Sequence record: PQ464595.1
Length of the DNA: 64,000 bases
Reading direction: 5' to 3' (one strand)
In this document: positions 1 through 64,000 of the stretch, one piece after another
How positions within the stretch are numbered: position 1 is the first letter of the stretch
Layout: the number at the start of each line of letters is the position of its first letter
The notes under the pieces: generated by a model
The model's input: the letters and a program-made list of their open reading frames with translations, nothing else
The model's database searches: none
What the model was told of the DNA's origin: nothing
Translations under genes and position numbers: made by a program

Positions 1-165
1 AGCATTACTGGCCTTTAGTAAGCAAAAAAAATTTGCATAGTCTTTCGATGTTATATACAGAAAAGTCAAGGGATTACCTGTTCATTTTAAAAGTCAACCA
101 TTTTTTAGTTGACTTAACTATTTTTCAGATAATTCCTAAAGTACTGTAATCCTTCGTGTAACGCT

Positions 166-366
166 CTACACGCGGCGTACCGTACAGCCTGAGCCACCGT
201 ACTCTACGTGGTACTCTGAGCCAGCAGCCAGCCGCTGAAGGGCGTTGCCTAACGTGCGTAGCTTCTTATCGCTTAGTGGTATCTGTTGCTGTACGATAGT
301 GATAGCCTCGTCAGTACTGTTAGCCTGGCCTACGATAGATCCTAAGCAACCAATGACAGTGAACAT
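166..366 (-). CDS. hypothetical early protein
   Basis: ORF with GGAG RBS, on the strand used by all neighbours. Confidence 0.6.
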   Translation of the reverse strand: MFTVIGCLGSIVGQANSTDEAITIVQQQIPLSDKKLRTLGNALQRLAAGSEYHVEYGGSGCTVRRV

Positions 367-434
367 GTTTAGTACTCCTATAAAAGAATAAGCCCCGCTA
401 GATTAGCAGGGCTTGTCGGTACTGTCAAGGACTA

Positions 435-842
435 TTACAGCCCTAAGATGATACGGGCTTCGCCCTTCTCACGGATAGCGTTAACGATGAATGATAACGT
501 ATCGGAGTTAATGTCGCCATCAGCCATCGCCTGACGTGCTGGCTTAGTGTAAGCACCGAAGCCGCAACGGTTAATGGTAATGTCATCCAGGTTAGTGACG
601 TACAGGTTAGACAGTACTTTCTCTGCCTTGAATACCGCATCAATGGTATACTCTACGTTACCGTCATTGACGTTCTGTAACTCGATAACCTGACGAGCCG
701 CCCAACGTCTACACTCTCTTACCAGGGCAGGGAAAGCAACATCTACAGTACTGTTCTGTACAGCATAATCCAGGGCAGCGACGCCAAAGTTTTTAGCCAG
801 AACCAGAACATCGTTGAAAGAGTTAGTAGTGAATGTAGCCAT
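435..842 (-). CDS. hypothetical early protein
   Basis: 135-aa ORF, AGGAG RBS, followed by terminator hairpin. Confidence 0.8.
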   Translation of the reverse strand: MATFTTNSFNDVLVLAKNFGVAALDYAVQNSTVDVAFPALVRECRRWAARQVIELQNVNDGNVEYTIDAVFKAEKVLSNLYVTNLDDITINRCGFGAYTKPARQAMADGDINSDTLSFIVNAIREKGEARIILGL

Positions 843-899
843 GATGAATCTCCTGATTAAGAGCGGGAAGCGGTATTGCCTCCCGATGTGTTTAATATA

Positions 900-1166
900 C
901 TACTGTTCGACCTGGGACGCAAGTACTTTTAACTTATTTTTTAAACCTTGTACAACATAAGTTACCAGTACTGTATTGCCATTAATATCGGTAAGCTTAT
1001 ACATTCCATCCTGATATAAGCGAAGGAAGTAAGTAGGCTCGGCTGCATCTTCTTCTGTATCAATAGACCAGAATTCAATTGCTGCATCTTCTTCGTCCTT
1101 AACGTCCATCATATCGCCAAGGGCATACTCGCCAAACAGTTTCTTAATCAGTGTTGTTACTCTCAT
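900..1166 (-). CDS. hypothetical early protein
   Basis: GAGG RBS and TTGCGT-17-TATACT promoter upstream. Confidence 0.8.
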   Translation of the reverse strand: MRVTTLIKKLFGEYALGDMMDVKDEEDAAIEFWSIDTEEDAAEPTYFLRLYQDGMYKLTDINGNTVLVTYVVQGLKNKLKVLASQVEQ

Positions 1167-1257
1167 GTTTACTTCCTCGTGTTGGGTTATGTGTTAAGTA
1201 TACTCCACCAGCAGAAGAACGCAAGTACTTTTTACGATTTAATTTATATTATTTTTT

Positions 1258-1302
1258 GGACGGATCTTGCCACCCTAGAGGGTTAGTGCGTTTCGCCGCA
1301 TT
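1258..1302 (-). ncRNA. two-hairpin small RNA motif, copy A
   Basis: TGCG-GCGAAA-CGCA, ACCC-TCTA-GGGT, tail GGCAAGATCCGTCC; directly after TTGACT-17-TATAGT. Confidence 0.7.
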
Positions 1303-1349
1303 GATAGTACTATAACAAAAGGGCTGACCGAAGTCAACCCCTTTCTGAA

Positions 1350-1547
1350 TTAAAAATCGCAATGAACTGCGTCTTCACCCTGGCCGTGCGGATACAATTG
1401 ATCTTGCACTTCGCTCCACACATCGTTATAAGTGTTCGCGTTCTCTTGAGTGTACTCGCCGAGTACTGCTTCCATTGCCTCATTGATGCCGAGGTGTTTA
1501 CGTGCGAGTACGTTGTTTGCGAGTTGCTTGATTCTTTCAGTAGCCAT
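1350..1547 (-). CDS. hypothetical early protein
   Basis: GGAG RBS, own promoter. Confidence 0.75.
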   Translation of the reverse strand: MATERIKQLANNVLARKHLGINEAMEAVLGEYTQENANTYNDVWSEVQDQLYPHGQGEDAVHCDF

Positions 1548-1618
1548 TCTGTTACTCTCCGTTGTTTCAGTACTGATAGTATATGACAGGGGCTAACTGT
1601 TGTCAACCCCTAATTTGA

Positions 1619-1927
1619 TTAATCCAGTAAACCCATACGATCCGCAACCTGCCATGCTTCTGACCCGTATACTGGTTCAATCTCATTCCAGTGATCCGGG
1701 TTCAGACTTCCACCAGCAGCAAGATGTTTCTCAATTGCCAGGATACGGCGATTCTGTTTCTCACGTACTGCCTGTTGTTCGTGGAGTTCGTGAGTCATTT
1801 CGCTAGAAGTTTTCAGGGCAATGCGACGGCCTGTTTCTGTATCCTGACCAACGATGTAAAAGCTTGAGGCTTCTTGACCGTTATACTCTACCAGGTCATG
1901 ACGTACAAAAAAGGTTAATCTAGACAT
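1619..1927 (-). CDS. hypothetical early protein
   Basis: 102-aa ORF, own promoter. Confidence 0.8.
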   Translation of the reverse strand: MSRLTFFVRHDLVEYNGQEASSFYIVGQDTETGRRIALKTSSEMTHELHEQQAVREKQNRRILAIEKHLAAGGSLNPDHWNEIEPVYGSEAWQVADRMGLLD

Positions 1928-2004
1928 TTGTTTACTTCCTGTTGTTGTTTCAGTACTGATAGAATAGCAAAGGGGCTGAACTATGTCAACCCCTTATTTG
2001 TACT

Positions 2005-2847
2005 TTATGCGGCATCTACTAATGAAGTTGCCAACTGCCACAATTTAGAGTTAAAGTCTAAATTCTTGTCGATGTTAGTCACGCCACGTGTTGTACGGCG
2101 GCGGCCTGTATCAGTGCGGCCTGATTGTCCACCAGCCATTACGTTTTGCTGTACGATGTTAAACGTACTGTAAAGGCTGTTGCTGTTACGATCAGTACTG
2201 TTCACGTTGCGAGTATTCAACAACTGTTCAGGACTGTACAGGAAGTTGATCCCTTCGCCTGGTTTTGGTAAACCTTCTTTGGCGAAGTAACCAGCAACGG
2301 CAAATGATTTGCGTTGTTTGTCGTCTAACTGGATGCGTGACATTTCGCCTTTGTAACGGTCGATAAGGTCGAAGTCTTTAACAACCTCGAATACACCTTC
2401 GATCACGTCATCCATGATGTTATGGCCTTTGTGATAGATCTTAGTGTTGCTTTGAGTGTTACCCATTACCAGGCCGTTAGCACAAACGAAACGGAATTGA
2501 CCACTGATCAACTGATAAGCACTAGTGCCATCATTAGCATTCAGAAGGATGATTTCGTTTGCTTCACCTTCTTTCATACCAGGTTGACGGAAACGCAACA
2601 TATGCTTTGTGAATTCGCGTTTTGATTCATCGCGTACACGTGCTTGCGTTGCGAACATCGGGAAGTAGTTTTCCTGAGCGAGACGATCAATCACGTCGAT
2701 AGTTGGCACTGGTGCGAACTTAGCTGAACGTGATTCGTGTGCATCGTACTGGAATACTGACGGTACTACGTCCAGCAGTTCAGTTCTGGTCAGTGGGCGG
2801 TTTTCTTTGATTGCTTTACCGTTGATACCCTGATACATCTTAATCAT
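2005..2847 (-). CDS. DUF932/DUF945 family protein
   Basis: Recognisable motifs PSVF..HESRS, FTKHMLRFR, EIILLNANDGTSAYQL..GQFRFVCANGLV. Confidence 0.88.
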   Translation of the reverse strand: MIKMYQGINGKAIKENRPLTRTELLDVVPSVFQYDAHESRSAKFAPVPTIDVIDRLAQENYFPMFATQARVRDESKREFTKHMLRFRQPGMKEGEANEIILLNANDGTSAYQLISGQFRFVCANGLVMGNTQSNTKIYHKGHNIMDDVIEGVFEVVKDFDLIDRYKGEMSRIQLDDKQRKSFAVAGYFAKEGLPKPGEGINFLYSPEQLLNTRNVNSTDRNSNSLYSTFNIVQQNVMAGGQSGRTDTGRRRTTRGVTNIDKNLDFNSKLWQLATSLVDAA

Positions 2848-2923
2848 GATTCGTTCCTCTCGTTTGGTGTAAGGTAATAGTACTGGATTTTGTTTATGTT
2901 GTCCAGTACTATTTTGAATTTAA

Positions 2924-3163
2924 TTACTCGATTCCGCCATCAACAGGCCAGCAATCACGAATGAATTTAGAACGGGATGGATCATCTTTCAGTGTCTTTG
3001 TCAAGAGTACTGCGTGATCTTCCGCACCTTTTTCAGTACTGAATTCCGCACCTGGTTGATAGTGCTGGCGGTTGTTGTCGTGGTCAAGGGCTACAACGTC
3101 GAACGGACGAGCATCGCGATCAGACCAGACTCTTACTTTAAATTCAATTCCTGATTTAGCCAT
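2924..3163 (-). CDS. hypothetical protein (start moved to MAKSGIEF)
   Basis: GAGG RBS before ATG at 3163; the track's longer N-terminus runs through the promoter. Confidence 0.7.
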   Translation of the reverse strand: MAKSGIEFKVRVWSDRDARPFDVVALDHDNNRQHYQPGAEFSTEKGAEDHAVLLTKTLKDDPSRSKFIRDCWPVDGGIE

Positions 3164-3547: not shown

Positions 3548-3549
3548 GA

Positions 3550-3672: not shown

Positions 3673-3742
3673 GTTGCTATCCTCCGTTTCAGTACTGATA
3701 GAATAGCAAAAGGGCTTAACCTAAGTCAAGCCCTATTTTGAA

Positions 3743-4321: not shown

Positions 4322-4473
4322 TTTGATATTCTCGCTTAAATGATTAAGGCCATTCCCTAATCCATGTAAAAGATTATACAGTACTGGATGAATAACGCAA
4401 GTACTATTCACGATTTAATTTATAAATGTTTACCTGTACAGATATACAGTACTTTTTAGTACTAAAAGCCATT

Positions 4474-4788: not shown

Positions 4789-4862
4789 GGTAGTACCCTC
4801 GTTTGTTTTCAGTACTGATATTATTGATCAGGGGCGAACATATGTCAACCCCTGGAATGAAA

Positions 4863-5213: not shown

Positions 5214-5254
5214 TTCGTTGTACCTTGTTTGTTTTTCAGTACTGATAGAATAGC

Positions 5255-5283
5255 AAAAGGGTTAACCGAAGTCAACCCTTATT
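5255..5283 (-). terminator. intrinsic terminator overlapping a sigma70 promoter (example of a repeated module)
   Basis: GGGTTGAC-TTCG-GTTAACCC-TTTT immediately after a stop codon; TTGACT in the 5' arm, TATTCT 17 nt downstream. Confidence 0.75.
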
Positions 5284-5284
5284 T

Positions 5285-5802: not shown

Positions 5803-6045
5803 TCAACGTCGAGCAATGAAATTGTTATATTGTTCATGAGTCATTAGGTTAAGTTTGCCATTGTCAATTACAATACGTTCATTGCGTGATACTTCTATCA
5901 CACTGAACAAGCCACAATTCAATTTGCGTGGTCTGACTTGTCCACCTTTATATTCTCGCACAATACGAATAGCCTTGTCAAGTACTTTAGTCTGAGCTTT
6001 AAAATGGATTCGTAATTGTGTATCATCTATCATGATCTTTTTCAT
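5803..6045 (-). CDS. hypothetical protein
   Basis: GGGGTG RBS before MKKIMIDD. Confidence 0.65.
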   Translation of the reverse strand: MKKIMIDDTQLRIHFKAQTKVLDKAIRIVREYKGGQVRPRKLNCGLFSVIEVSRNERIVIDNGKLNLMTHEQYNNFIARR

Positions 6046-6095
6046 TGATACACCCCAGGAATAAACAGGGGGCATATAACCCCCTGTATCGCATT

Positions 6096-6488
6096 TTAAG
6101 AGACTTTCTGTAAGTGTTTAGCCAGACGTACCGCCGTCATACTACGACGCCATGAGACACGGCACGGCTTGTTATTTGGCGTTTTCAGAGTCTGTTCGCC
6201 GATAATACCTGGCCGCTGGTTAGTGATAGTACTGGCATCCATCATCAGACGTTCACGCTTCAGGAAGTCAATAGTACTGTCAATCGCGGTATCCATTGAT
6301 TGATGCATCTCAATCTCTGAATGCTGTACAGTTTCCTGTACTTCTGGTACTTCCACCAGCACCGCCCAACGTTCACCAGTTGCAGCGTCTTTGCCGAAGT
6401 CTTTGAACTTTGCACTTTCGGCAGTACTCTCGTTCAGGAAGTTACGAGCCAGTGTTCTTGTACCGAAAAAGTGAGTCTGAGTAGTCAT
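6096..6488 (-). CDS. hypothetical early protein
   Basis: AAGGA RBS, AGTACTTGCGT-type promoter. Confidence 0.8.
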   Translation of the reverse strand: MTTQTHFFGTRTLARNFLNESTAESAKFKDFGKDAATGERWAVLVEVPEVQETVQHSEIEMHQSMDTAIDSTIDFLKRERLMMDASTITNQRPGIIGEQTLKTPNNKPCRVSWRRSMTAVRLAKHLQKVS

Positions 6489-6559
6489 TGTTTCTTTCCT
6501 TCTGTGTGGTTGATGTAAGTACTATAACAGTACTGATTGAATAACGCAAGTATTATTTT

Positions 6560-7302: not shown

Positions 7303-7375
7303 TTCAATTCTCCGTTCACTTGATGTAATCATTATAAAGTACTCGCATACATAAAGCAAGTACTTTTGATAATGT

Positions 7376-9287: not shown

Positions 9288-9346
9288 ATAAGTTATAATG
9301 CTGTATATAAAAACAGTACTGGATATTTCACCAGTACTTTATGTTT

Positions 9347-9646: not shown

Positions 9647-9724
9647 CTGTCTATCCTCTCGCTTAATGTGTAACTTCATTATAAAGTACTCGCATTCAAT
9701 AAGCAAGTACTTTTGATAATGATT

Positions 9725-10116: not shown

Positions 10117-10203
10117 GATAACTTCCTCTTAATTAATGGTTAGTGTGTTTCAGTAAGTTCATTATATAGTACTCGCATAAGAAAGCAAGTACTATTATTG
10201 AAT

Positions 10204-10653: not shown

Positions 10654-10706
10654 GATAACAGTATAGCAAAAAGGGATTGAACTTGTCAACCCCTATTTTT
10701 GAATCT

Positions 10707-12870: not shown

Positions 12871-12936
12871 GCTTAAGTGATAACTCATTGTAAAGTACTC
12901 GCCAGTAATAAGCAAGTACTTTTGACAATTAATTAT
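12871..12936 (-). repeat. 66-bp promoter cassette, identical to 13204-13269
   Basis: Exact direct repeat containing TTGCTT-17-TACAAT and two AGTACT sites. Confidence 0.9.
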
Positions 12937-13203: not shown

Positions 13204-13269
13204 GCTTAAGTGATAACTCATTGTAAAGTACTCGCCAGTAATAAGCAAGTACTTTTGACAATTAATTAT
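13204..13269 (-). repeat. 66-bp promoter cassette, identical to 12871-12936
   Basis: Exact direct repeat. Confidence 0.9.
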
Positions 13270-14289: not shown

Positions 14290-14341
14290 ATAGTACTTTA
14301 ACATAAAGGGCTAACCGAAGTCAACCCTAGATTTGTAAAGA

Positions 14342-15437: not shown

Positions 15438-15707
15438 TTATGCCTTTAGTGATTCTGCGTTAAAAGCCCCGCTAATGGGCTTACATTGGAGATTTACGGC
15501 ATAGTTTACTTTCTTGTGAATGATATACATACACGAATCAAATTGATGTGAATAGGGCATATCATAGATCCGACGCTGTACAAGTACGCCGCCAACTACA
15601 AAAGCCAGGTAGCCGCTAAACTCTGTAGTACGCGGCCCCGTTGCGGTCATAGTCTTTGCGATCCTGGTACGCGGATCAATCAGGTCTGAAATGGGTTTAA
15701 GTTCCAT
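15438..15707 (-). CDS. hypothetical protein
   Basis: GAG RBS. Confidence 0.65.
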   Translation of the reverse strand: MELKPISDLIDPRTRIAKTMTATGPRTTEFSGYLAFVVGGVLVQRRIYDMPYSHQFDSCMYIIHKKVNYAVNLQCKPISGAFNAESLKA

Positions 15708-15851
15708 AGGCGTTTACTCTCAATTAAAGGTAGTCTAAAACGCTCTAGGATTGATTCTAAGCGTTTCTAACAGTACTGTGACCCGATGATATTACAGTAC
15801 TGTTAGAACTGCTTAAGGGGGCATATAGCCCCCTTAGTTTACGCCGTGGGA

Positions 15852-16535
15852 TTACTCGCCAGCGGTTTCAGTTTCGACTTTGTACTGTTTGATAAAGTCG
15901 TCGCGGTCGAGCTTGCTTTCTGACAGAATCGCTTTGAGTTCGTTACCCATGTTACCTTTTACCGGCATATCGTACTGTTTGCCGTTGTATTCAACAGTAA
16001 CACGTTCGTAAGACACTACCGGAGCCGCCGCCGCTTTCAGTTTCGCTTTCGCACCAGCTTCAACCGCTGCTTTCGCCATCGTCAGATCCATACCTGAATC
16101 AATCAGCAGTTTCAGCATGGCTTTCTTCTCTTCTTCCAGTGCCTTTTGTGCGGCCTGGGCTTCCGCTTCGCGTTGTGCTTTCGCGGCGTTGCGTGATGCT
16201 TCGCGTTCCTGTTTACGTTTAGCGATGTTTTCCGCTTCGCGTTCCAGTACTGCCGGAATCAGTGCCACCGTCGCAGACAGCAGGCGGGAAATGATTTCTA
16301 CGCTGTCAGACTTATCAACCAGATAATCAGCCAGGGCGTTAGACTGTACGCCGACGAAAGTCGCAACGTCGCTTTCGAACTGAGCCAGTACTTCAGCAGT
16401 ATGTTCGGTCTGACCTTCTGGCAGGTTAGGCAGAACCGGAGTAGTCGCCAGAACGATGCTGTTCAGGGTTACTTTCGGAGCTTTAACAGCAGTTTCAACG
16501 GTAGCAGCAACAACAGTTTTGTTTGACTTAGACAT
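15852..16535 (-). CDS. H-NS/MvaT-like nucleoid-associated protein (putative)
   Basis: Coiled coil ending KAMLKLLIDSGMDL (cf. H-NS MLIADGIDP), flexible linker, C-terminal domain YNGKQYDMPVKGNMGNELK...LDRDDFIK; high-expression codon bias. Confidence 0.55.
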   Translation of the reverse strand: MSKSNKTVVAATVETAVKAPKVTLNSIVLATTPVLPNLPEGQTEHTAEVLAQFESDVATFVGVQSNALADYLVDKSDSVEIISRLLSATVALIPAVLEREAENIAKRKQEREASRNAAKAQREAEAQAAQKALEEEKKAMLKLLIDSGMDLTMAKAAVEAGAKAKLKAAAAPVVSYERVTVEYNGKQYDMPVKGNMGNELKAILSESKLDRDDFIKQYKVETETAGE

Positions 16536-18602: not shown

Positions 18603-19775
18603 ATGTTACCATTTCCACAATTAGTAGTATACGGAAATTCTACAACTCCGATACTGTCTATTAAAAAGTTTGCGACGGGTGCTGCTAATACCGGATTATT
18701 ATATAGTAATGGTGAATTATACATGGGAGGTATAAATTCTAATTATCAGTTAGGATTAGGTACTAACACGACCATGAATGGAACACATAATTTAAGCTTA
18801 ACAGGAGTTGATACTTTTTACATACATTATTATGCTACGATAGCGATAATGAATAATGGTACTATAATGTTTGTGGGAAGGAATGCTAATTTCTTTGGCA
18901 CAGGTGGTAATAGTACAGTATGGATTGATTGCACATCATATTTCAGTTCTAAAGGTTTAACTACTGGAAGTATTTCAGATATACAGATGGGCAATAATGG
19001 TACGGTAGTACTTGACACATCGGGTAATATGTATGGTATAGGAACTAATCAGTACGGGGAGTTTGGTAGAGGTAATTCTACGGCATTAACATCTTTAACA
19101 TTACTTGACACATCTGTACAGAAGATTAGTTATGTAGCTGATTCGTTATATTATTTGAAGGGTAATAATTTATATAGGGCTGGAAGAAATACTAGTGGAG
19201 AATTAGGTGATTCTAGTACTACTAACAAGAATACGTTTTCGGTTTTAACTGGCACGAATTTTAATGGTTTAATAATTGACGTTAAGGGTGGAACTAACAC
19301 CTGTATGATATTAGCAAATCCAGCTACTGGTTTAAGATATTACTATACTGGTTCAAGAGCTTATGGAGTACAGGGGAATGGAGTTGATGCGGCGGCGATA
19401 TCGACATTTACGAATCAATCATCAATGAACAATAAGATTACTGCGTTAACTACTAACACATCTGGAACATCGAATTACATATCACATGTATATGCTACTG
19501 ATGGGATATATGGATGTGGATATGATAATGGTGGAGCGGTAGGTACTGCTGGAGTTGGAAGGAGTGGTTCACCGGTTCGAATATTATCATGGACATTATG
19601 TGCGGGGATACCGAGTACTGACTTAAGTACTATAAAGTTTTTTAGTTCATTTGATGGTATTAATGCTACATTTTTTTCATACAATGATAGTTTATATGCT
19701 TGTGGATTATCGGCCTTTACCGGATTGCCGAGTAATACAACTTCATTTACAAAATTAACAAACACACCATATTAA
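18603..19775 (+). CDS. MLPFP-family protein 1, RCC1/BLIP-II-like beta-propeller; putative virion or adhesin protein
   Basis: Repeats such as G.N.YGEFG.G and AG.N.SGELG. Confidence 0.8.
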   Translation: MLPFPQLVVYGNSTTPILSIKKFATGAANTGLLYSNGELYMGGINSNYQLGLGTNTTMNGTHNLSLTGVDTFYIHYYATIAIMNNGTIMFVGRNANFFGTGGNSTVWIDCTSYFSSKGLTTGSISDIQMGNNGTVVLDTSGNMYGIGTNQYGEFGRGNSTALTSLTLLDTSVQKISYVADSLYYLKGNNLYRAGRNTSGELGDSSTTNKNTFSVLTGTNFNGLIIDVKGGTNTCMILANPATGLRYYYTGSRAYGVQGNGVDAAAISTFTNQSSMNNKITALTTNTSGTSNYISHVYATDGIYGCGYDNGGAVGTAGVGRSGSPVRILSWTLCAGIPSTDLSTIKFFSSFDGINATFFSYNDSLYACGLSAFTGLPSNTTSFTKLTNTPY

Positions 19776-19787
19776 GGAGAAAGAGGA

Positions 19788-21812
19788 ATGTTACCATTTC
19801 CAATATTAAACTATTACGGGAATAATATAGTACCTCCTGTTAAGTTAATTAAGAGATTTTCAATATCATCTAATGGTTCAGGAGTACTATTACATTACAC
19901 TAATGGTGATTTATATGCTTTAGGAACAAACACTTCTGGTAAGTTTGGTACAGGTGATACTACTGCTATCACGGGTGCTTGGAGATTAATAGCAAGTAAT
20001 GTACGTAAGTACGTATGTTCTCATAACTTTACTATAGTAATACACAATGATGGTACTGTACTGTACAGTGGTAATGTGGGTGGTATATTCACATCGGCAT
20101 TAGGGTATTCATTTCCTAACAGTACTGTCTTTGCGGATATGACTTCGGCGTTTAGTACATTTGATATATCTGGCATTAAGTCCTTAGAGGCATGTGAGGA
20201 TTCGGGCACTAGATTCTGGTTAATAGACAAGGATAATGTTCTATGGTGTATAGGTTCAAATCAGTACTACGCACTAGGTTCATCATCATCGTTAGCGACT
20301 GTTAACTGGACACAGGCGGTGAATGGTACTAATGTTGAAAGAGTTATGCCAGGATTACAGGCGGTATGGATTAAGAAGTTAGACGGTACTTACTGGAGAG
20401 CTGGGACCAATGCTTATGGAACATTAATGGGTTCAAATAGTACGGCGACAAATACTACATTTACTATGCAGAATACATATACTGGAACATCAGATGCGAG
20501 TACTATAGTGAACTTAACTATGTCTCAATACAACATGTATCTATTAATGAAGGATGGTACAGTACGAATATATGGTAATAAGGGTGCAGGGCAGGTTGGT
20601 GATGGAACAACAACTGGTACAGCCTTTTCGCCATTCAATCCTAGTCTTACCGGAATAACTAAGATACAAGATAGTACTGGTTCGTTTTACAGTTCATACT
20701 TGGTTGGTCCGAATGGATTATTAGTTTCGGGTCAGGGTACAAACAACATGTTTGGTTTAGGTACTGGAGCATCGCCTACTACATTCACATTATCCAATAC
20801 AGGTGTAATTACCAATTTAGATTATGCTAATTTAGATTACGTTAATTTTGTCACCTCGAACGCGGGATATGTGGTTGTTGGAGATGAAGTATATGCGGCG
20901 GGGAATACTACTTATACATTAGGTGCTGCGGCATATAATACATGGACATTGATGAACACGCCATTGAGTACACATTGGGGTACTGCTGGATTAGTTAGTA
21001 CTGTTACAAATACGAGTACTACATCACCGACAATGACTAGGTACAGTCATAGTAGATGTTCATACGGGGATGATAAGTTCATTATCTATGGTGGATACAA
21101 TGGTAGTACTATTTTCAATGACATTAACATATATGATGGTACAACAGGAACATGGAGTACTGTACCGGTGACGGCGAGTACACAGGCGAGATTTGGTTCA
21201 GGAATTTGTACTATTGGAGATACTATGTATGTCTTTTGTGGTAACAGTACTACATCGACTGCGACAAACACGGTATACTCGGTGGATTTGATTACAGGCG
21301 AGTGGACGTTACTTACAACAACTGGAACACCTACTGCGAGATCGCATGTAAGAGCTTGTACTATAGGAAATATGATATACTTATGGGGTGGTGAGAGTGT
21401 ATCCACGTGGTATTCATTTAATCCTAATACTAATGTGTTTACGTCTATGACGAGTTCACCACTTACTGCGACTATTGATTCGGATATGGTTACTGATGGA
21501 AAGGACATATACATTAACAATAATACTGCTGGATTTTACAAGTACAGTTTCAAGACTAACAGTTGGGTGACATTATCGAACAAGAACAGTGCTGCGATGA
21601 AGATGGCATACAGTAACGGATACATTTATTGTACTATGGCTGGCAATACATTTATGTTCGCATATAAGGTAAGTACTAACATCTGGACGCAATTACCTAA
21701 TCCTTCATTGATTAGTACTAGTCGTCAGTGTTTAGCATCGGCGGCGGGTAAGGTAGTATATACTGGCGGTATAGCTAGTACTAACAGTAATAACTGTTTT
21801 ACAATAACATAA
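19788..21812 (+). CDS. MLPFP-family protein 2, RCC1-like plus Kelch beta-propeller
   Basis: RCC1-like repeats followed by Kelch repeats (IIYGGYNG...YD, YVFCG, YLWGG). Confidence 0.82.
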   Translation: MLPFPILNYYGNNIVPPVKLIKRFSISSNGSGVLLHYTNGDLYALGTNTSGKFGTGDTTAITGAWRLIASNVRKYVCSHNFTIVIHNDGTVLYSGNVGGIFTSALGYSFPNSTVFADMTSAFSTFDISGIKSLEACEDSGTRFWLIDKDNVLWCIGSNQYYALGSSSSLATVNWTQAVNGTNVERVMPGLQAVWIKKLDGTYWRAGTNAYGTLMGSNSTATNTTFTMQNTYTGTSDASTIVNLTMSQYNMYLLMKDGTVRIYGNKGAGQVGDGTTTGTAFSPFNPSLTGITKIQDSTGSFYSSYLVGPNGLLVSGQGTNNMFGLGTGASPTTFTLSNTGVITNLDYANLDYVNFVTSNAGYVVVGDEVYAAGNTTYTLGAAAYNTWTLMNTPLSTHWGTAGLVSTVTNTSTTSPTMTRYSHSRCSYGDDKFIIYGGYNGSTIFNDINIYDGTTGTWSTVPVTASTQARFGSGICTIGDTMYVFCGNSTTSTATNTVYSVDLITGEWTLLTTTGTPTARSHVRACTIGNMIYLWGGESVSTWYSFNPNTNVFTSMTSSPLTATIDSDMVTDGKDIYINNNTAGFYKYSFKTNSWVTLSNKNSAAMKMAYSNGYIYCTMAGNTFMFAYKVSTNIWTQLPNPSLISTSRQCLASAAGKVVYTGGIASTNSNNCFTIT

Positions 21813-21821
21813 GGAGAGAAT

Positions 21822-22973
21822 ATGTTACCATTTCCAATATTATTAGAATACGGAAATTCTGTACAAGCTCCACCAACTATAGAAGCATTATATGAAGTTA
21901 GTCCAGGGACGTACTTACTGTATAGTACTGGAGAATTATTTTATAGAGGTAGAAATACGGGTGGAAAATCTGGTATAGGTACTGGTATAAAAAATGATCA
22001 ATGGTATGCTAGTAATACTAATGTACAGATGATTAATTTTGGTGATGGGCCAGGTTTTCTAATGAAAACCGATGGTTCTTACTGGATTACTGCTTCATCT
22101 AACGTGTTAGGAATATCTGGTTATGTAAGTTCTACATGGTCAGATTGTACATCAAAGGTTACTGCCTTTGCTGCACCAGGTGAAATTAAAGCTATTAGTG
22201 GTACTAGTGGTGGTATAGTCATATTAAAAACAGATGGTACTATTTGGGTAGCAGGTTCAAACACTAACGGTCAATTAGGGTTAGGTGCAACGAGTAGTAC
22301 TCAAACATTTACGCAGGTTGCGTCAGATGCGATTTCAATATATTGTTCTCCACAGAATATATTTTATATTAATTCAAGTAATCAATTATTTGGTACAGGT
22401 TATAATAACTTAGGTCAATTAGGCGATGGCACAGTAAATTCAAGTACTACATTTAAGCAATTAACATCTGGTTCGTTATCTACATATCCATATGTACATT
22501 CGGTATCTGGTATTAGTTCCAATACTATATTAATGTGTAGTGCTACTTCAACATCGGAAAAGGTATTATTAGCATGTGGTTCAGGAAGTAATATAGGATT
22601 AACTACTGGAACATCACAACAAAATTCATTTGTTTTAGTTCCATCAATGAGTTCTAGTACTGCTAGAGTGATAAAGTTAAGTCCTTCGATGGGTTCTGCG
22701 TCGAACATGTTTGTATTAACAACGGATGGATTATATTTCATAGGTAATAGTCAATACAATCAGAGTGGTATAGGAAGTACTGGACAAACATTATATACTA
22801 AGGTTACTACATTACCTGATAGTATAGATAATGTTCAAAACATTTCATATTTTGGTTCAAGTTCTGAGGGTTCAGCAATTCATTATAATAATAAAGTTTA
22901 CAGTACTGGTGCTGCTGGAGCATGGGGTTCAGGAAGTTCCACATGGGTATTAAGAACAGACACACCATATTAA
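21822..22973 (+). CDS. MLPFP-family protein 3, RCC1-like beta-propeller
   Basis: AGSNTNGQLGLG and TGYNNLGQLGDG repeats. Confidence 0.82.
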   Translation: MLPFPILLEYGNSVQAPPTIEALYEVSPGTYLLYSTGELFYRGRNTGGKSGIGTGIKNDQWYASNTNVQMINFGDGPGFLMKTDGSYWITASSNVLGISGYVSSTWSDCTSKVTAFAAPGEIKAISGTSGGIVILKTDGTIWVAGSNTNGQLGLGATSSTQTFTQVASDAISIYCSPQNIFYINSSNQLFGTGYNNLGQLGDGTVNSSTTFKQLTSGSLSTYPYVHSVSGISSNTILMCSATSTSEKVLLACGSGSNIGLTTGTSQQNSFVLVPSMSSSTARVIKLSPSMGSASNMFVLTTDGLYFIGNSQYNQSGIGSTGQTLYTKVTTLPDSIDNVQNISYFGSSSEGSAIHYNNKVYSTGAAGAWGSGSSTWVLRTDTPY

Positions 22974-22985
22974 GGAGAAAAAGGA

Positions 22986-24140
22986 ATGTTACCATTTCCA
23001 ATAATAAATCAGTACGGGAATACTGTACTTAAAAATCAAATAAAGAAAGTAGTGGGTTCAGGTAGAGTTGCTGGATTATTATATAATAATGGAAATTTAT
23101 ACATGAGAGGTTCAAACCAGTATACTAATTTTGGTATAGCTGGTGCATCTGATTATAAAAATTGGGTACTAGTGCATACTAATGTAAAAGAGGTATGGTT
23201 AAATAATTATCACACAGTGATACAGACATATGATGATCAATTCTTATGTGCTGGATATGGAAGGGCAATAGGATATGGTGGAACGAATTATTTGTGGATG
23301 GTGTATGATAGATTATACACATTAACATCTACACCAGCAAGTACTGTTCAGCAAATATGTTTGAATCAATATGGTACATTTGTATTATTGAATACTAATA
23401 ATTTATATGCTTTAGGATTTAACGCAGCTTACTGTTTAGGTGTTGGTGCGTTGAACAGTATTAGTACTGCGTTCACATTAACACGATCCGCGACTAAGTA
23501 CATTCATAGTAATATCAATGGCACTTTTGCTATAGGAACTAATAATTTACTATATGCACGTGGTTCAGCGTCGAACTTTAGGATGGGTAATAACAGTAAT
23601 ACTGACATGTCATCTTGGACTCAGATAACATTACCTACTGGATACACGTATCCAATTTTAGCGTTTGAGGGTTATATACATACATTAATATATGCTGCGT
23701 CAGATAGTTCTTTAAGTAGTACTGCGATATTATATTGTGGTTATACCTCGACCAACCCAGGCGGTGCTATTCCACCATATGGTTCTAACTATACTCCTAT
23801 TTTTAGAGTTGGGGCTGGTGGTACAAATAATTCATTTTCATCATTTGGTACTGGATATCAAGATACAGGCCATAAATCATTTTATACTGATTTTGGTAGT
23901 ACAAATTTATATTCTGCGGGAACTGCGGGACCAAGTTTAGGATCAGCTACTAATAAAAGTTCTGGATTTACTATTATGCCATTACCAAGTACTGGAATAA
24001 CTTCATTTTGTACTGTTGGCACGACTGATACAGTAGGTGCAACATTTGCTGTACATAATAATTTATTGTATGCGTGTGGAGATAGCACATGGTTAGATGC
24101 TACCACATACAATTTTGTTTTACAATCTGTACCAGAATAA
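22986..24140 (+). CDS. MLPFP-family protein 4, RCC1-like beta-propeller
   Basis: RGSNQY.NFG and LGFNAAYCLGVG repeats. Confidence 0.8.
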   Translation: MLPFPIINQYGNTVLKNQIKKVVGSGRVAGLLYNNGNLYMRGSNQYTNFGIAGASDYKNWVLVHTNVKEVWLNNYHTVIQTYDDQFLCAGYGRAIGYGGTNYLWMVYDRLYTLTSTPASTVQQICLNQYGTFVLLNTNNLYALGFNAAYCLGVGALNSISTAFTLTRSATKYIHSNINGTFAIGTNNLLYARGSASNFRMGNNSNTDMSSWTQITLPTGYTYPILAFEGYIHTLIYAASDSSLSSTAILYCGYTSTNPGGAIPPYGSNYTPIFRVGAGGTNNSFSSFGTGYQDTGHKSFYTDFGSTNLYSAGTAGPSLGSATNKSSGFTIMPLPSTGITSFCTVGTTDTVGATFAVHNNLLYACGDSTWLDATTYNFVLQSVPE

Positions 24141-24152
24141 GGAGAAAAAATT

Positions 24153-24662
24153 ATGTTACCATTTCCAATAATGAATCAATATGGAAATATCATTGTACGT
24201 GATGATTATGAGAGGTTTATCCTGGAGTTAACATCTAGCAGTACTAATAAGTTAGTGACGTACAATCAATCTTATAGTCTACTAAATGCGTCAGGAGCTT
24301 ATGATAGAGTTTATATGTATGGTACGTCTTCTGTATCAGGAACTATGTGGGGAACACCTTATGGGAATAAAATGACATGGGATAGTACTTTTTGTAGAGT
24401 TATACAACATGCTTTCCCAACTCAAGATTTATATAATGATTTTATAGCAAATGGTTCTAATAGAGTAGTTTGTTTTGTACGTTCTCCTATTACTTCTATG
24501 TCAAATTACATTTCATTAACTAGAAATGGATATACTAGTTCAACATATTCTACATTTAGTGGGTGCACTATAACACAGTTTATATATTATGATAATAATT
24601 CTGGCAGAGTTATGACATATGATCCTAGTACTATTAGTACTCCAACATTTTATTATCCATAA
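24153..24662 (+). CDS. MLPFP-family protein 5, unrelated small C-terminal domain
   Basis: Shared N-terminal peptide, GGAG RBS. Confidence 0.75.
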   Translation: MLPFPIMNQYGNIIVRDDYERFILELTSSSTNKLVTYNQSYSLLNASGAYDRVYMYGTSSVSGTMWGTPYGNKMTWDSTFCRVIQHAFPTQDLYNDFIANGSNRVVCFVRSPITSMSNYISLTRNGYTSSTYSTFSGCTITQFIYYDNNSGRVMTYDPSTISTPTFYYP

Positions 24663-24671
24663 GGAGGATAT

Positions 24672-25841
24672 ATGTTACCATTTCCACAATTAGTTCAGTA
24701 CGGGAATATAGCACCACAACCCTTACCGATTAAAAAATTACTTACTCACAATAATTCTGTATTTGTTCTTATGTTCTCTGGTCAATTATATGTCAGAGGA
24801 TTTAATACATCGGGCCAATTAGGAGTAGGTAGTACTACAAACGTAACCACCTGGACATTAAGTACTACAAGTGTAGATGATTTATGGGTTGGTGGTACTT
24901 CTACATTAATACGAAAATATGATGGCTCTTATATGTTCGCAGGTAATAATACTGGTGTTGGTAATGCCAACGGTACTAGTACAACGACATGGGCAGCGTG
25001 GACAGTGAAAGATACATTAACTTTAGGTATTATAGATATTGCTCTCAGTACTGGTTCTATTAGCGTATTACTAGAAGATGGTACTATTAAATCAGCAGGC
25101 ATTGGTTCTAACGGTCAATTAGGAAATAACACAACAACAAATAATATAGTTAGTTCATTTGTTAATAGTATTATTCCTGTTGGTGTTACGCCAGTTTCAT
25201 TATTAGCTTCCAATACGATGCATGGTTTTATTGGTGATAATAACAGATTATATCATACTGGTACAATTAATGCGGCAAATACAGTGAGTCCTGGCACAGC
25301 ACAATATACAACATATACATTAAATCCAGTAATAGGTAGTACTAATGCAGTACTTAGCTACATGAACAACTCAAACGGTTTAGCTATGGGTTTAATAAGA
25401 ACGTCAGGAAATGTTGTAAGAATGTACTTTGGTGGCTCTCAAATATTTGGTCAAATGGCTGATGGTGTTAACGGTAGTTTATCAAATTTAAAAGCATTTG
25501 GTGATTTTACTGGTACTCCATATCCATCTGGAACAATTCTTGATATAGCTACAGGATATTCATATTATGCTCAAATGGTTATTACCAGTACTGGTATATT
25601 TGCTGCTGGTCGAAACACAGGTTCTCAGGCTGGAGCATTAAGTACTGGTATTGCGTCGGAGGCATTAACATATACATCGTGTGTATTACCTTCTGGATTT
25701 GATACTACCAACGCTAAGGTTTCTATGTGTCAGGGAAGAACATATTTAACAGATGGCAATTTCATTTATAGTTCAGGTACATTAACAACTTATGGTGGCC
25801 CAAGTACTACTACATTTATTTTAGATGACCCAAGATATTAA
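24672..25841 (+). CDS. MLPFP-family protein 6, RCC1-like beta-propeller
   Basis: RGFNTSGQLGVG and AGIGSNGQLG repeats. Confidence 0.82.
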   Translation: MLPFPQLVQYGNIAPQPLPIKKLLTHNNSVFVLMFSGQLYVRGFNTSGQLGVGSTTNVTTWTLSTTSVDDLWVGGTSTLIRKYDGSYMFAGNNTGVGNANGTSTTTWAAWTVKDTLTLGIIDIALSTGSISVLLEDGTIKSAGIGSNGQLGNNTTTNNIVSSFVNSIIPVGVTPVSLLASNTMHGFIGDNNRLYHTGTINAANTVSPGTAQYTTYTLNPVIGSTNAVLSYMNNSNGLAMGLIRTSGNVVRMYFGGSQIFGQMADGVNGSLSNLKAFGDFTGTPYPSGTILDIATGYSYYAQMVITSTGIFAAGRNTGSQAGALSTGIASEALTYTSCVLPSGFDTTNAKVSMCQGRTYLTDGNFIYSSGTLTTYGGPSTTTFILDDPRY

Positions 25842-35717: not shown

Positions 35718-35787
35718 TTGATTATTTTCACTTAATTTTCAGTACCAGTAGAATAGCAAAAGGGTTGACATGAGTCAACCCTTTTTT

Positions 35788-49198: not shown

Positions 49199-49420
49199 TT
49201 ACCCCTTTGGAGATACGTTGATTTCGACATTGAAGCCCAGGGCTTCTACACAGTTCAGCAGTTCATCGACGGTGAACATGTACAGACGTTCATCCAGAAG
49301 ATTTGAAACACGTGCTTGATGGAGGTCGAACTTACGTGCTAGGTCACGTTGACCAAGACCCTGCTCAGCAGCAGTGACTTTGATAAGATTGACCAGACGA
49401 ATTTTGATTTGATTGCTCAT
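49199..49420 (-). CDS. XRE-family helix-turn-helix protein
   Basis: LGQRDLARKFDLHQARVSNLL...FTVDELL..VEALG. Confidence 0.85.
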   Translation of the reverse strand: MSNQIKIRLVNLIKVTAAEQGLGQRDLARKFDLHQARVSNLLDERLYMFTVDELLNCVEALGFNVEINVSPKG

Positions 49421-60834: not shown

Positions 60835-61187
60835 ATATCCTTAACTGCTCTCGTTAAAATGTAATTGAAGCGACAGCAATCATAAAACGTTAGACCGAAC
60901 CTTTCTTCCTTCACTATATCACGATATTCTACGATGCTTAGTTTATCTTTTCCTGAATCATCTAAGTTCAGTAGTAGACCAAAATCAACAACGCATACTA
61001 GAATGTGAAGATCACCTTCATCATCATAATATCCAAGTCGTAGTAATGGTACTGGTGCATCTTCTGCGAAGTACATAACGTATGTAGTGCCGTTATAATC
61101 AATAGTACCATCTTCATAACGTAAGAAATGATGATAGTTAGTATCGAAGAACTTCGCTATATCCTTTAGTGAGTTAAGTTCGTTCAT
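60825..61187 (-). CDS. hypothetical protein
   Basis: AAGGA RBS before MNELNSL. Confidence 0.65.
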   Translation of the reverse strand: MNELNSLKDIAKFFDTNYHHFLRYEDGTIDYNGTTYVMYFAEDAPVPLLRLGYYDDEGDLHILVCVVDFGLLLNLDDSGKDKLSIVEYRDIVKEERFGLTFYDCCRFNYILTRAVKDMGF

Positions 61188-61219
61188 ATATATTTCCTTA
61201 TATATACAGTTCATTTTAG

Positions 61220-61296
61220 AGCGTGGAGAGGGATTTGAACCCCCGATTTTACGGATTTGCAATCCGTTCCAATTGACCAGACTCTGGCATCCACGC
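61220..61296 (-). tRNA. tRNA-Cys(GCA)
   Basis: GCGTGGA/TCCACGC-T, ACGGA-TTGCAAA-TCCGT. Confidence 0.93.
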
Positions 61297-61304
61297 TAGA
61301 TTCT

Positions 61305-61895
61305 TTATAAGTACAGGTGTACTTTTATATCAGGAGTAGCTTGTACAAGTGAACCAAACTCTTTACAGCGTTCTAATATCTCCCAAATGGCAATACATTC
61401 AGGTAATTCCAGTATTAAACCATCAGTGGTCATACGTTGGAAATGAGATTCTTCTGAATCTGGAAGTACCTTATATTCGGTATTTAATGTTGTCTGAAGT
61501 TCCTTGGTATTAAAAATAGTACCGTCAGGCCGCTGCTTAGCAACATATGAGAATCTTATCCAGTTGTTGTCAGCACCAGCATTTACCATACTGAACTTCC
61601 CATTGAGAAATCTAATAACTTCAACTTCTTGGTTATAAGAATTCTGTACTTTTCTATAACCACTACCACCAGGTACGGCAAAGTTATGATCAACATATTC
61701 TTCTTCAGTAACAGTACATCCTAGTACCATTTTGAAAATGAGTTCATTTGTAGCAATGATTCTAATTATCTTGAGTTCTTTAGTTCCAATAACTGTTCTT
61801 TCAGTATTAGAAAGCTCTCTTGATAATTCCATGTTAGGCATTTCACGAATGAAACGCCTAACAATGTTTGTTCTGTTTATTAACGAATCTTCCAT
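61305..61895 (-). CDS. hypothetical protein
   Basis: 196-aa ORF. Confidence 0.7.
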   Translation of the reverse strand: MEDSLINRTNIVRRFIREMPNMELSRELSNTERTVIGTKELKIIRIIATNELIFKMVLGCTVTEEEYVDHNFAVPGGSGYRKVQNSYNQEVEVIRFLNGKFSMVNAGADNNWIRFSYVAKQRPDGTIFNTKELQTTLNTEYKVLPDSEESHFQRMTTDGLILELPECIAIWEILERCKEFGSLVQATPDIKVHLYL

Positions 61896-62413
61896 TTAGA
61901 TTCTAAATCCTTTAATACAGCTTCCTTTATTTTACGAATATCAGTAAGACATTCAAATGGAAGTACATTATCATGTACTGTCATTTGTTGAAACCATTGT
62001 TCTTCAGTTTCATAGTAACGGTACTTTTTATAGGTAACATGTTTTTTAGGTTCACCAATTAATAATGTTAACTGGTTTCTAACCATAGATGCCATAACCG
62101 AACGAATAGAAGGATCAGTTTGTTCATCTAATGTTGAATTGAGAATTTCTGCATAATGAGCGTACTGTACTTTTCGTTGTTCATATTCAAGTTGTGATAA
62201 TGAATCGTTTAACGCATCACCATAAATGTCACGAACTTCAATTTCTGTATCAGTAATTCCTAAACAATATCCTTCATTAGAACTAAGGCGTATAGTTCCA
62301 TCTGGATCAATTTCGTATTGATACAAATCAAAAGATGTATTCAGCAATTCACCTAAACCAGAAAGTACTGCTATTGTAAATTCTTCATTATTAGTAACCG
62401 TAGTTTCTTCCAT
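61880..62413 (-). CDS. hypothetical protein (C-terminus resembles 61305-61895)
   Basis: EEQWFQQMT...LPFEC vs EESHFQRMT...ELPEC. Confidence 0.7.
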   Translation of the reverse strand: MEETTVTNNEEFTIAVLSGLGELLNTSFDLYQYEIDPDGTIRLSSNEGYCLGITDTEIEVRDIYGDALNDSLSQLEYEQRKVQYAHYAEILNSTLDEQTDPSIRSVMASMVRNQLTLLIGEPKKHVTYKKYRYYETEEQWFQQMTVHDNVLPFECLTDIRKIKEAVLKDLESKWKIR

Positions 62414-62458
62414 ATTGTACCTATAAAAATAGGGAGCAATTTGCTCCCTTCATAATCA

Positions 62459-62647
62459 TTAATTAGATTGGTTTTGACTTGGGTCTACTGGAGCATCAGG
62501 TTGAACAGCAGATTCGTCAGTACTTGGTGCGTCAATGCCATTAGGATCGGCAGGGATACCAACATCGAGAACTGAATTTTCAGGCTCTTTGTTGAGTGCG
62601 GCAAATACTGATTTGATCCAAGACCAAATTTTACTTAATAGATTCAT
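62459..62647 (-). CDS. small protein with amphipathic N-terminus and acidic tail
   Basis: AGGAG RBS. Confidence 0.6.
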   Translation of the reverse strand: MNLLSKIWSWIKSVFAALNKEPENSVLDVGIPADPNGIDAPSTDESAVQPDAPVDPSQNQSN

Positions 62648-62723
62648 GTAAGTACTCCTAAAATGAACAGAACTTTGTTCTGCTAATTATTTAATTCAAG
62701 AGTACTTACACAGAAGGTAAATT

Positions 62724-63302
62724 TTATTTTCCAGTTGTAACAGTTGTAACAGGAGGCACTTGTTCCTTCTTCATATGTACATTAACTGCTGGAACACAGC
62801 TTACGGATGTATCCCAAGTTACACTATTGGAAACCACGTAACAATTAGCATCCGGTTGTTCTACTTTTTTCATATAGTAAACATCTTTGCCCGAAGTACC
62901 GATAATCTGAAGCTTACCAGCATTAGGAGCCAGTTGAGGTGAATCATCTTCTGATTCCTCTTGCTGAACTTCTGCTGGTTCAGGTTCTTCCGGTTTAGCT
63001 ACTGGAGTATTCTCAGAACTGGTGCTTTGAACTTCCTTTTGCTCAACAACCGGAGCTTCGTCTACTGAAGTACTAGTTGTAGTACTTGTCGTAGGTGACG
63101 CATCAGACTGTTTCTCCGTACCAGATGTGGTAGGAGTATTAACCGCTGGAGCTTTCGCTTGTTCAGGTGTTTTAGTCGGTTTATCAGCAGCAGGTGATGA
63201 TACCGGAACATCTGAAGGAAACGGTTCACAACCGGATAGCAGTACTGAAGTTGTTGCTACTACGAGTGTCATAACTATTGCTAAACGTTTCATTATATAC
63301 AT
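62724..63302 (-). CDS. putative lipoprotein with low-complexity linker
   Basis: LLSGC lipobox, P/T/S/E-rich middle. Confidence 0.7.
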   Translation of the reverse strand: MYIMKRLAIVMTLVVATTSVLLSGCEPFPSDVPVSSPAADKPTKTPEQAKAPAVNTPTTSGTEKQSDASPTTSTTTSTSVDEAPVVEQKEVQSTSSENTPVAKPEEPEPAEVQQEESEDDSPQLAPNAGKLQIIGTSGKDVYYMKKVEQPDANCYVVSNSVTWDTSVSCVPAVNVHMKKEQVPPVTTVTTGK

Positions 63303-63504
63303 ATACCCTGTTAGTGTTTGTAATCACCTGGTACTTCTTACATTTCACCTAAGTAGCGAGCTACAATATAGTAATCTGGAGTTTCTTCAGGTAAATCTTT
63401 ATTACATTCAGTTACAGCAGCATTGGCTTCTTCAATGGTATCAAAACCACGATGCCAAATTTCACCCCAACCACGTTCTGATTCAATATACTTAACGATG
63501 TGTT

Positions 63505-63939
63505 TCATACAATATCCTTCATAAAGTCAAACCATTTAAGATGTTTACTAAGAACACTTGTTCGTTGATCATCACTATCACGTTCAACCGCAGGTATTAT
63601 TTCTTCATCATAATTTCCGTCTTTAACTAATTCAATAAAAATTGAACCTTCATCATAACCAATGATAAGTTCTTGGTTATCATAATCGGATGGCAATTTT
63701 TTGTTCAGTTTATTTTTCATAAAACATGAAGATAAACTTAAAGCTTTTTTAAAATTTTCATATGATTTTTCACTTTTAAAATCATCACGATGAATTAATG
63801 ATTCATCGGCAACATTAAAATATCGCTGCTCAGCACCTGTTACTTTGTGTACAGGTTTATCCCAGCGACTGTACATAACTATTGTTAATTGTTTAATATC
63901 AACAACAGAGTCGTCATCTTCAAAGCTAAATCCCCACAA
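63505..63939 (-). CDS. hypothetical protein (may start outside the window)
   Basis: ORF on the coding strand. Confidence 0.6.
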   Translation of the reverse strand: MWGFSFEDDDSVVDIKQLTIVMYSRWDKPVHKVTGAEQRYFNVADESLIHRDDFKSEKSYENFKKALSLSSCFMKNKLNKKLPSDYDNQELIIGYDEGSIFIELVKDGNYDEEIIPAVERDSDDQRTSVLSKHLKWFDFMKDIV

Positions 63940-64000
63940 TCCAGTGTACGGATTACGTTCAATTCGTGATACGGTATTGCATAGATTTCCACTTTTGAAT

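Follow-up and report, generated by a model that had tools for sequence, protein, structure and literature searches.

Recurrent short DNA words of several kinds have been described in bacteria and their viruses. The cyanobacterial word HIP1 (GCGATCGC) is a short perfect palindrome that is over-represented many-fold genome-wide, in coding and non-coding DNA and independently of codon usage; it is shared by a clade, shapes codon choice and contains methylated CGATCG/GATC (PMC6604393). Chi and uptake sequences, whose scattered copies are under weak selection and can stand in for one another, mark own versus foreign DNA, and they are asymmetric and strand-biased words with known readers. Phage and toxin-antitoxin operators, such as the palindromic TGTACA repeats of yefM-yoeB, are found at promoters and are few per genome. 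The hexamer AGTACT is the recognition site of the type II restriction-modification enzymes ScaI and Eco255I. We describe here the multiplication of AGTACT in a DNA stretch of 64,000 nucleotides (the window), which is identical in sequence to bases 1–64000 of the genome of Erwinia phage Kaldavass (PQ464595.1). Our preferred explanation, to which we give slightly less than an even chance, is that AGTACT is a positively maintained, unmethylated recognition site for a dimeric DNA-binding protein and serves also as an operator at early promoters; both the protein reading the word and the effect of its reading are what we infer.

Kaldavass is a jumbo myovirus with a linear genome of 366,556 bp, was isolated on Erwinia aphidicola, and is a member of the T4-derived jumbo phages of "group 2.2", as are XbC2, GAP32, CBB, fHe-Yen9-04, 121Q/PBECO4/phAPEC6, and RaK2. 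The first 18 kb of the window contain approximately 55 small genes, of which almost all lie on the minus strand, followed by a plus-strand array of RCC1-repeat genes, more minus-strand genes, and the start of a tRNA cluster. AGTACT occurred 262 times in the window, against 21.6 ± 4.4 copies in dinucleotide-preserving shuffles (shuffle maximum, 33), and 1114 times in the whole genome, against 118 expected, corresponding to an approximately 12-fold and 9-fold excess, respectively. It was the commonest hexamer of both the window and the genome, and an order-2 model gave it a z score of 82, compared with 20 for the next unrelated word. The sequence-only reading of the window had assumed a G+C content of about 37%, for which 39.7% was measured, and had reported at least 27 copies in the first 5 kb, where we counted exactly 27. 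It had also stated that the excess persists across the window, in coding frames and intergenic DNA, often as an extended octamer, and each of these statements held. The density was approximately 21 copies per 4 kb up to 32 kb and approximately 10 beyond; 195 copies were located in coding DNA over three frames (3.5/kb) and 67 in non-coding or boundary DNA (8.6/kb); and CAGTACTG, the commonest octamer of the whole genome, accounted for 62 of the 262 copies. Genome-wide, the coding and non-coding densities were similar (2.95/kb and 3.74/kb), as the non-coding surplus was limited to the first 50 kb of the genome (8.2/kb), outside of which non-coding DNA was no richer in AGTACT than coding DNA.

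Markov correction and a synonymous-codon test, both suggested in the sequence-only reading, left the enrichment in place. Synonymous codon shuffling within the genes of the window yielded 48.8 ± 5.9 coding copies (maximum, 65), against the 195 observed, which were distributed as 94 AGT-ACT (Ser-Thr), 73 A-GTA-CTn (Val-Leu), and 28 nAG-TAC-Tnn (x-Tyr-x). Genome-wide, 453 of the 704 Ser-Thr pairs (64%) were written AGT-ACT, compared with 11% expected from the usage of AGT and ACT in other contexts (log-odds, 2.7), and 73 of the 170 Val-Leu pairs in the window were written A-GTA-CTn. The dipeptides Gln-Tyr, Val-Leu, and Ser-Thr were themselves over-represented, suggesting that the word also shapes protein sequence. 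The AGT-ACT share of Ser-Thr pairs was 54–74% in every 50-kb block of the genome and 54–66% in RaK2, phAPEC6, fHe-Yen9-04, and an IMG/VR locus (L017), in contrast to 0–7% in Vibrio phage 2.275.O, PA5oct, Atu_ph07, and E. coli. A maximal-order Markov model expected 218 copies in the window, close to the 262 observed, as would follow from an artefact of composition or codon usage. This expectation, however, is inflated by the motif's own 5-mers, AGTAC and GTACT, which are equally over-abundant, and such an artefact is rejected by order-1 to order-3 models, by the dinucleotide and synonymous shuffles, and by relatives of similar G+C content without the excess, leaving it practically no chance. 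Codon and dinucleotide usage fail to explain the excess, which extends over all three frames and non-coding DNA.

The distribution of the trait was examined in the capsid-gene neighbourhoods of 80 IMG/VR relatives and in regions of named phages. AGTACT was enriched 3.5- to 10-fold in Kaldavass-like contigs, fHe-Yen9-04, Hallingskeid (84 copies vs. 10.8 expected), phAPEC6, and RaK2. No enrichment was observed in the fetched regions of Vibrio phage 2.275.O (8 vs. 12 expected) and Atu_ph07 (3 vs. 5 expected), or in the capsid-gene neighbourhoods of approximately 40 environmental relatives. In a maximum-likelihood tree of the major capsid protein and portal, the AGTACT-rich genomes, namely Mimas-, Eneladus-, Asterius-, and Alcyoneusvirus together with Hallingskeid, formed one clade with 100/100 support, and the Vibrio phage was its sister, suggesting that the trait arose once, on the stem of the Enterobacterales-infecting lineage. 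The trait is thus common to one phylogenetic group and absent from the relatives outside it, as for HIP-type words, and ancestry and host effects are inseparable in these data. The density in the phage (3.0/kb) was about 50 times that in a single 50-kb sample of E. coli K-12, which is not the Erwinia host (0.06/kb), so that AGTACT is far denser in the phage's own DNA than in this comparison DNA. Separately, the related Pseudomonas phage PA5oct avoids the very word that the enterobacterial clade multiplies: its 41-kb region (L093, 65850–107010) contained no AGTACT, against 14 expected, and none of its 77 Ser-Thr pairs was written AGT-ACT.

The same comparison bears on a purely physical role, in which the flexible central TA step would aid the bending, packing, or ejection of the 366-kb genome. 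Such a role would be in keeping with the even spread, weak selection, unmodified state, and positional independence of the sites. However, genomes of comparable or greater size are packed in the absence of the motif by the sister Vibrio phage (349 kb) and by Atu_ph07 (490 kb), the TA-centred palindromes TGTACA, GTATAC, and TATATA were not enriched, GGTACC and CGTACG were absent, and DNA mechanics would not require specificity at the level of a hexamer. We therefore regard this role as highly improbable.

The form of the word itself was that of a bare hexamer. Flanks followed the preference H-AGTACT-D, with C > T ~ A >> G at position -1 (G, the rarest flank, at 6.5%) and the complementary order at +6; the two positions were biased but statistically independent of each other. 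Palindromy did not extend beyond the hexamer, as flank complementarity was at chance level and the flanks had no linked asymmetry. Beyond ±3 bases, contexts of 14 to 18 bases were nearly all unique, indicating that AGTACT is not part of a mobile or repeated element. Variants at the outer positions (NGTACT) were enriched 1.9- to 4.0-fold, compared with 0.8- to 1.8-fold for inner-position variants, suggesting a graded specificity, as for a protein-binding site; with AGTACT masked, GGTACT and CGGTACTG were still among the top words. Spacing was near random and slightly more even (coefficient of variation, 0.89–0.92; longest gap, 2 kb), and no regular spacing or helical periodicity was detected genome-wide. 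Three further candidates were set aside. An interspersed repeat element (REP/MITE-like), a longer repeat, or a hairpin was ruled out by the unique 18-mer contexts and the independent flanks. A by-product of the purging of GGTACC and CGTACG could supply too few copies (about 40 expected of each) for 1100 sites. The SlmA-binding site (SBS), which has the sequence GTGAGTACTCAC, did not fit either, as G was the rarest base at -1, no outer GT/AC preference was present, and just eight SBS-like matches were found.

In contrast to what has been argued for HIP1, AGTACT was associated with neither a cognate methyltransferase nor a methylated site in the published Nanopore motif lists. A HIP1-like arrangement, in which AGTACT is modified by a phage or host methyltransferase and its sites are retained because they protect the DNA or mark it epigenetically, would suit its identity as the ScaI/Eco255I sequence and the presence in the Kaldavass genome of three DNA methyltransferases (C5, N6/N4, and Dam-type). 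Comparison of native and amplified Kaldavass DNA by Nanopore sequencing, however, reported modification solely at GATC, CCWGG, and TGCAT (PMC11780129), so that the three methyltransferases match three motifs. Similarly, AGTACT-rich Hallingskeid has two methyltransferases and only the two modified motifs GATC and CCWGG (PMC11780129). As CCWGG and TGCAT were detected in Kaldavass with 454 and 352 sites, respectively (PMC11780129), a modified motif with 1114 sites would hardly have been missed. Protection from restriction also gives no reason to multiply a site. These data contradicted the methylation proposed in the sequence-only reading, and we consider the arrangement quite unlikely.

The setting of the excess is a genome that eliminates most other palindromes. 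The sequence-only reading had contrasted AGTACT with the ordinary avoidance of palindromes by phages, a contrast that was, if anything, understated: 24 of the 64 hexamer palindromes had no copy in the Kaldavass genome, GCGC was completely missing from the 366 kb (371 expected), and TGCA occurred 372 times, against 1495 expected. The clade thus purges palindromes to an extreme yet multiplies one of them tenfold, to the point of bending protein sequences, which suggests a strong, clade-wide function at the DNA level that is so far undescribed. No mention of AGTACT enrichment was found in the searchable literature, including work on CBB, RaK2, Kaldavass, and the genomics of jumbo phages. Among known phenomena, HIP1 comes closest; AGTACT shares with it a short perfect palindrome found many-fold above expectation throughout the genome, an excess independent of codon usage, restriction to a clade, and an influence on codon choice. 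It differs from HIP1 in occurring in a virus, in sequence and length (6 bp, weakly 8 bp), in its higher density (3 per kb), in its apparent lack of methylation, and in the elimination of other palindromes around it. The dispersal, weak selection, and interchangeability of its copies resemble those of Chi and uptake sequences, but AGTACT, being its own reverse complement, is directionless. As a GTAC-core hexamer palindrome standing twice per promoter at helical-repeat spacing and overlapping the -35/-10 region, it also resembles phage and toxin-antitoxin operators, whose number, in contrast to about 1100 copies, is small, and none of the proteins checked here proved to be a cognate repressor. 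Finally, it shares the 6-bp palindrome and the hexamer-level specificity of ScaI/Eco255I sites; however, restriction targets are avoided by phages (0 vs. 14 expected in PA5oct), whereas here the site is multiplied and not reported to be modified.

The phages concerned, among them 121Q/PBECO4, RaK2, GAP32, CBB, and Erwinia phages, are being isolated with a view to therapy and biocontrol. They offer an experimentally tractable counterpart to the long-unsolved problem of HIP1, as their genome is small, their life cycle is fast, many relatives have been sequenced, and the sister lineage lacks the enrichment. They may also show how T4-related phages that have no modified bases distinguish self from host, or how they time the shut-off of early genes. 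AGTACT also provides a simple sequence signature for spotting this clade in metagenomes.

Part of the copies occupied fixed positions in early promoters, the geometries of which are predictions from sequence. Approximately 30 of the 262 window copies were located in two repeated promoter modules, designated types A and B (Table 1). In type A, AAA-AGTACT-TGC(T/G/A)T, the motif ends in the T with which a -35-like TTGCNT begins. The pattern AGTACTTGC[GTA]T occurred 14 times, always between 917 and 17394 and 13 times on the gene strand, and six of these elements carried a second AGTACT 20–21 bp downstream, abutting TATAAT or TACAAT, a spacing that places both sites on the same helix face. In type B, represented by ten minus-strand matches to TCAGTACTGAAA between 1565 and 18246, five elements consisted of TTGAC-N17–19, a -10 hexamer, ATC, and AGTACT-GAAA, which puts AGTACT at about -3 to +3; the TTGAC(A/T) -35 lies within a G+C-rich hairpin. 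Type B promoters were recovered by an independent consensus scan. The sequence-only reading had described one class of promoter with AGTACT overlapping the -35 box, sometimes with a second copy in the spacer, and another with AGTACT at the transcription start, and both classes were thus recovered.

The promoter positions were maintained in other genera. Orthologues of the promoter of gene 6096–6488, in which AGTACT lies at the edge of the -35 and again immediately ahead of the -10, were identified in 121Q, RCIP0023, Serratia phage BF, fHe-Yen9-04, and an IMG/VR contig, one of which is a RaK2-like phage, and the AGTACT positions were kept across four genera despite diverged flanks. Serratia phage BF and an IMG/VR contig of 371 kb also contained type A and B modules; a scan of IMG/VR for an exact 15-mer of the type B module returned mostly chance matches. 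As expected of a promoter-embedded operator, AGTACT is therefore found at fixed positions, repeatedly, and in orthologous promoters, with promoter activity being predicted.

The fixed placement of copies (at the edge of the -35, before the -10, and at +1), its conservation in other genera, and the non-coding density of 8.2/kb in the first 50 kb could also mean that AGTACT is a transcription element only, belonging to the consensus by which RNA polymerase or a phage sigma factor recognises early promoters, all other copies being incidental. However, only about 30 of the 262 window copies lie in promoter modules, non-coding DNA beyond the first 50 kb is no richer than coding DNA, recoding affects 64% of the Ser-Thr pairs across the genome, whatever the class of gene, and the sequence contexts are otherwise unique. 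We regard an exclusively transcriptional role as very unlikely.

The maintenance of the sites was analyzed in a 21-kb alignment of six AGTACT-rich genomes. AGTACT was kept between genomes slightly more often than any hexamer (0.37 vs. 0.33 at 79% identity; 0.30 vs. 0.16 at 66% identity), suggesting that positions turn over while the density is held; density and codon-level saturation were equal in all lineages despite this drift. By a rough count, with approximately 3200 one-mismatch loci and 1114 sites, neutral loss would outrun neutral gain about 6-fold, which suggests that something favours AGTACT continuously. This could be a non-adaptive drive, in which biased mismatch repair or gene conversion of the very-short-patch type makes AGTACT faster than mutation destroys it. 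Turnover with little positional conservation, near-random spacing, and an effect equally strong everywhere in the genome are consistent with such a drive, and the log-odds of about 2.7 could equally be a conversion bias. A repair drive, however, should deplete its substrates, and no one-mismatch neighbour fell below its ratio in AGTACT-poor relatives; the ratio of the deamination product AGTATT/AATACT was 1.32, compared with 1.39 in AGTACT-poor controls. In addition, no Vsr-like gene or domain was found among the neighbours of the methyltransferase genes, and the fixed promoter copies conserved across genera indicate function. The lack of precursor depletion, with which some kinds of drive would still agree, thus favours weak selection per site over repair bias, and we consider a repair drive unlikely as the cause of the excess.

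The search for a reader protein covered the two candidates named in the sequence-only reading, thirty small early proteins, and a ParE-like gene with its partner, among which no AGTACT-binding protein was found. Neither of the two named candidates tracks the trait. The gene at 15852–16535 (minus strand) is confined to Mimas- and Eneladus-like phages and, unlike the trait, absent from Asteriusvirus and RaK2, and the helix-turn-helix gene at 49199–49420 was found in just four phages (Kaldavass, XbC2, CBB, and GAP32), although Asteriusvirus and RaK2 have the trait as well. The product of 15852–16535 is a 227-residue protein rich in Ala, Lys, and Glu that matched only PHROG families of unassigned function; an apparent resemblance of its C-terminal 45 residues to the H-NS DNA-binding domain had no sequence support in Pfam or the PDB. 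No DNA-binding Pfam domain was detected in the thirty small early proteins. The gene at 5803–6075 (minus strand) encodes a ParE-like toxin domain (PF24732, E = 9e-12), and its homologues occurred in 70 phage records, every one of which belongs to an AGTACT-rich genus, while phages of Pseudomonas, Vibrio, and Agrobacterium yielded none; in the annotation of one relative, it is called a putative structural protein. This gene always follows the conserved partner gene 6096–6488 (minus strand; 130 residues), whose promoter contains paired AGTACT. The predicted structure of the partner (mean pLDDT, 79) resembled no known DNA-binding fold, the best Foldseek hit in the PDB having an E-value of 0.2. 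Many other genes must share this clade-specific pattern; the pair is a lead and not a result.

Under the preferred reading of AGTACT as a maintained recognition site, a candidate protein would bind double-stranded AGTACT as a symmetric dimer, and this reader may be encoded by the phages, whose enterobacterial jumbo clade would have gained it on its stem, or may belong to the Enterobacterales hosts. The approximately 1100 copies would for the most part be interchangeable, each conferring a small benefit, such that the density is held while positions drift; selection would be weak per site, with a scaled coefficient of about 2.7. Together, the copies would mark the phage DNA, at about 3 sites per kb compared with about 0.06 per kb in the E. 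coli sample. A minority would have fixed places in strong early promoters, either bordering the -35 on its upstream side, lying just upstream of the -10, or spanning the transcription start, and there the same protein may regulate by occluding or recruiting RNA polymerase. The "genome-wide self tag or binding site" of the sequence-only reading stands in so far as the excess is non-compositional, uniform, clade-wide, about 50 times the E. coli density, and accompanied by conserved promoter positions; its methylation part and both of its named proteins fell away, and "self tag" goes beyond these observations. The possible roles of a tag include self/non-self discrimination, genome compaction, and a replication-coupled sink that switches off early promoters. 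In the last case, multiplying genomes would draw the protein off the AGTACT early promoters, and early transcription would stop in step with replication. The more specific proposal that group 2.2 phages mark their own DNA by an unmodified tag in place of a modified base, the tag being read by a dimeric protein and the approximately 1100 copies serving to discriminate or as a sink, is conceivable but doubtful.

Several points weigh against a maintained protein-binding site. A strict palindrome of 6 bp would be more usual for a restriction-modification enzyme than for a regulator; a non-adaptive drive would also account for the high turnover and the nearly random spacing; the proteins searched yielded no reader; and the case against methylation is built on motifs published from manual inspection of virion DNA, a list not targeted at AGTACT. 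Moreover, the N-terminal domain of the partner protein 6096–6488 also occurs in AGTACT-poor contigs. This domain of about 40 residues (FFATRTLAR...GKDA..G.RW) is common to the partner and to small proteins of two IMG/VR contigs of 102 kb and 89 kb (L193 and L194), which belong to unrelated AGTACT-poor phages, one of them having a stand-alone 43-residue version.

Table 1. AGTACT copies, predicted promoter modules, and associated features in the 64,000-nucleotide window
Feature	Position	Strand	Basis or detail
AGTACT, dispersed copies (n = 262)	1..64000	.	counts, shuffles, codon-shuffle test
Type A two-site promoter (predicted)	12887..12920	-	AGTACT sharing its last T with TTGCTT; second AGTACT 21 bp downstream, abutting TACAAT
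Further type A two-site modules (n = 5)	4371-4405, 7331-7364, 9678-9711, 10161-10193, 13220-13253		
Type A single-copy element, one of the 14	917..927	-	AGTACTTGCGT
Other type A starts	1219, 3219, 4395, 7354, 8961, 9701, 10183	-	
Other type A starts, continued	10570, 12374, 12910, 13243, 15349	-	
Other type A starts, continued	17384	+	
Type B promoter (predicted)	1565..1606	-	TTGACA, 17 bases, TATACT, ATC, AGTACT-GAAA; consensus scan, TTGACA-17-TATACT at 1606-1578
Same type B geometry	1948-1989, 3687-3729, 4807-4848, 5234-5275		pattern search
Type B variant	35737-35778		GGTACT in place of AGTACT
Two AGTACT copies 11 bp apart	6518..6534	-	between -35-like TTGCGT and start of gene 6096-6488
AGTACT pair 24 bp apart	15772..15801	-	upstream of gene 15438-15707, within a longer inverted repeat (in its arms)
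Terminator-like hairpin	9315..9338	-	arms AGTACTGG and CCAGTACT
Terminator-like G+C-rich hairpins containing the next promoter's TTGAC -35	3711-3734, 5257-5280, 10672-10694, 14307-14328	-	
RCC1-repeat gene array	18603-25841	+	five paralogous genes
Chi copies in first 15 kb (n = 8)	1205, 1710, 2129, 5180, 6353, 8265, 13575, 14946		CCACCAGC

Other features of the window were noted beside the AGTACT sites. A hairpin matching the one at 9315..9338 is listed as terminator Torf26 in phage CBB. In the four terminator-like hairpins that contain the -35 of the next promoter, the T-run continues into the -10, so that each small early gene looks like a self-contained terminator-promoter unit. The five RCC1-repeat genes, annotated "regulator of chromosome condensation", lie on the strand opposite to the surrounding genes, and their array contains many AGTACT copies at spacings of multiples of three bases. 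The host Chi sequence (GCTGGTGG) was also enriched in the phage genome, with 34 copies against 3.6 (order-1) or 13.4 (order-3) expected. The eight copies in the first 15 kb are all oriented such that RecBCD coming in from the record's left end would read them, and this cluster may protect that end.

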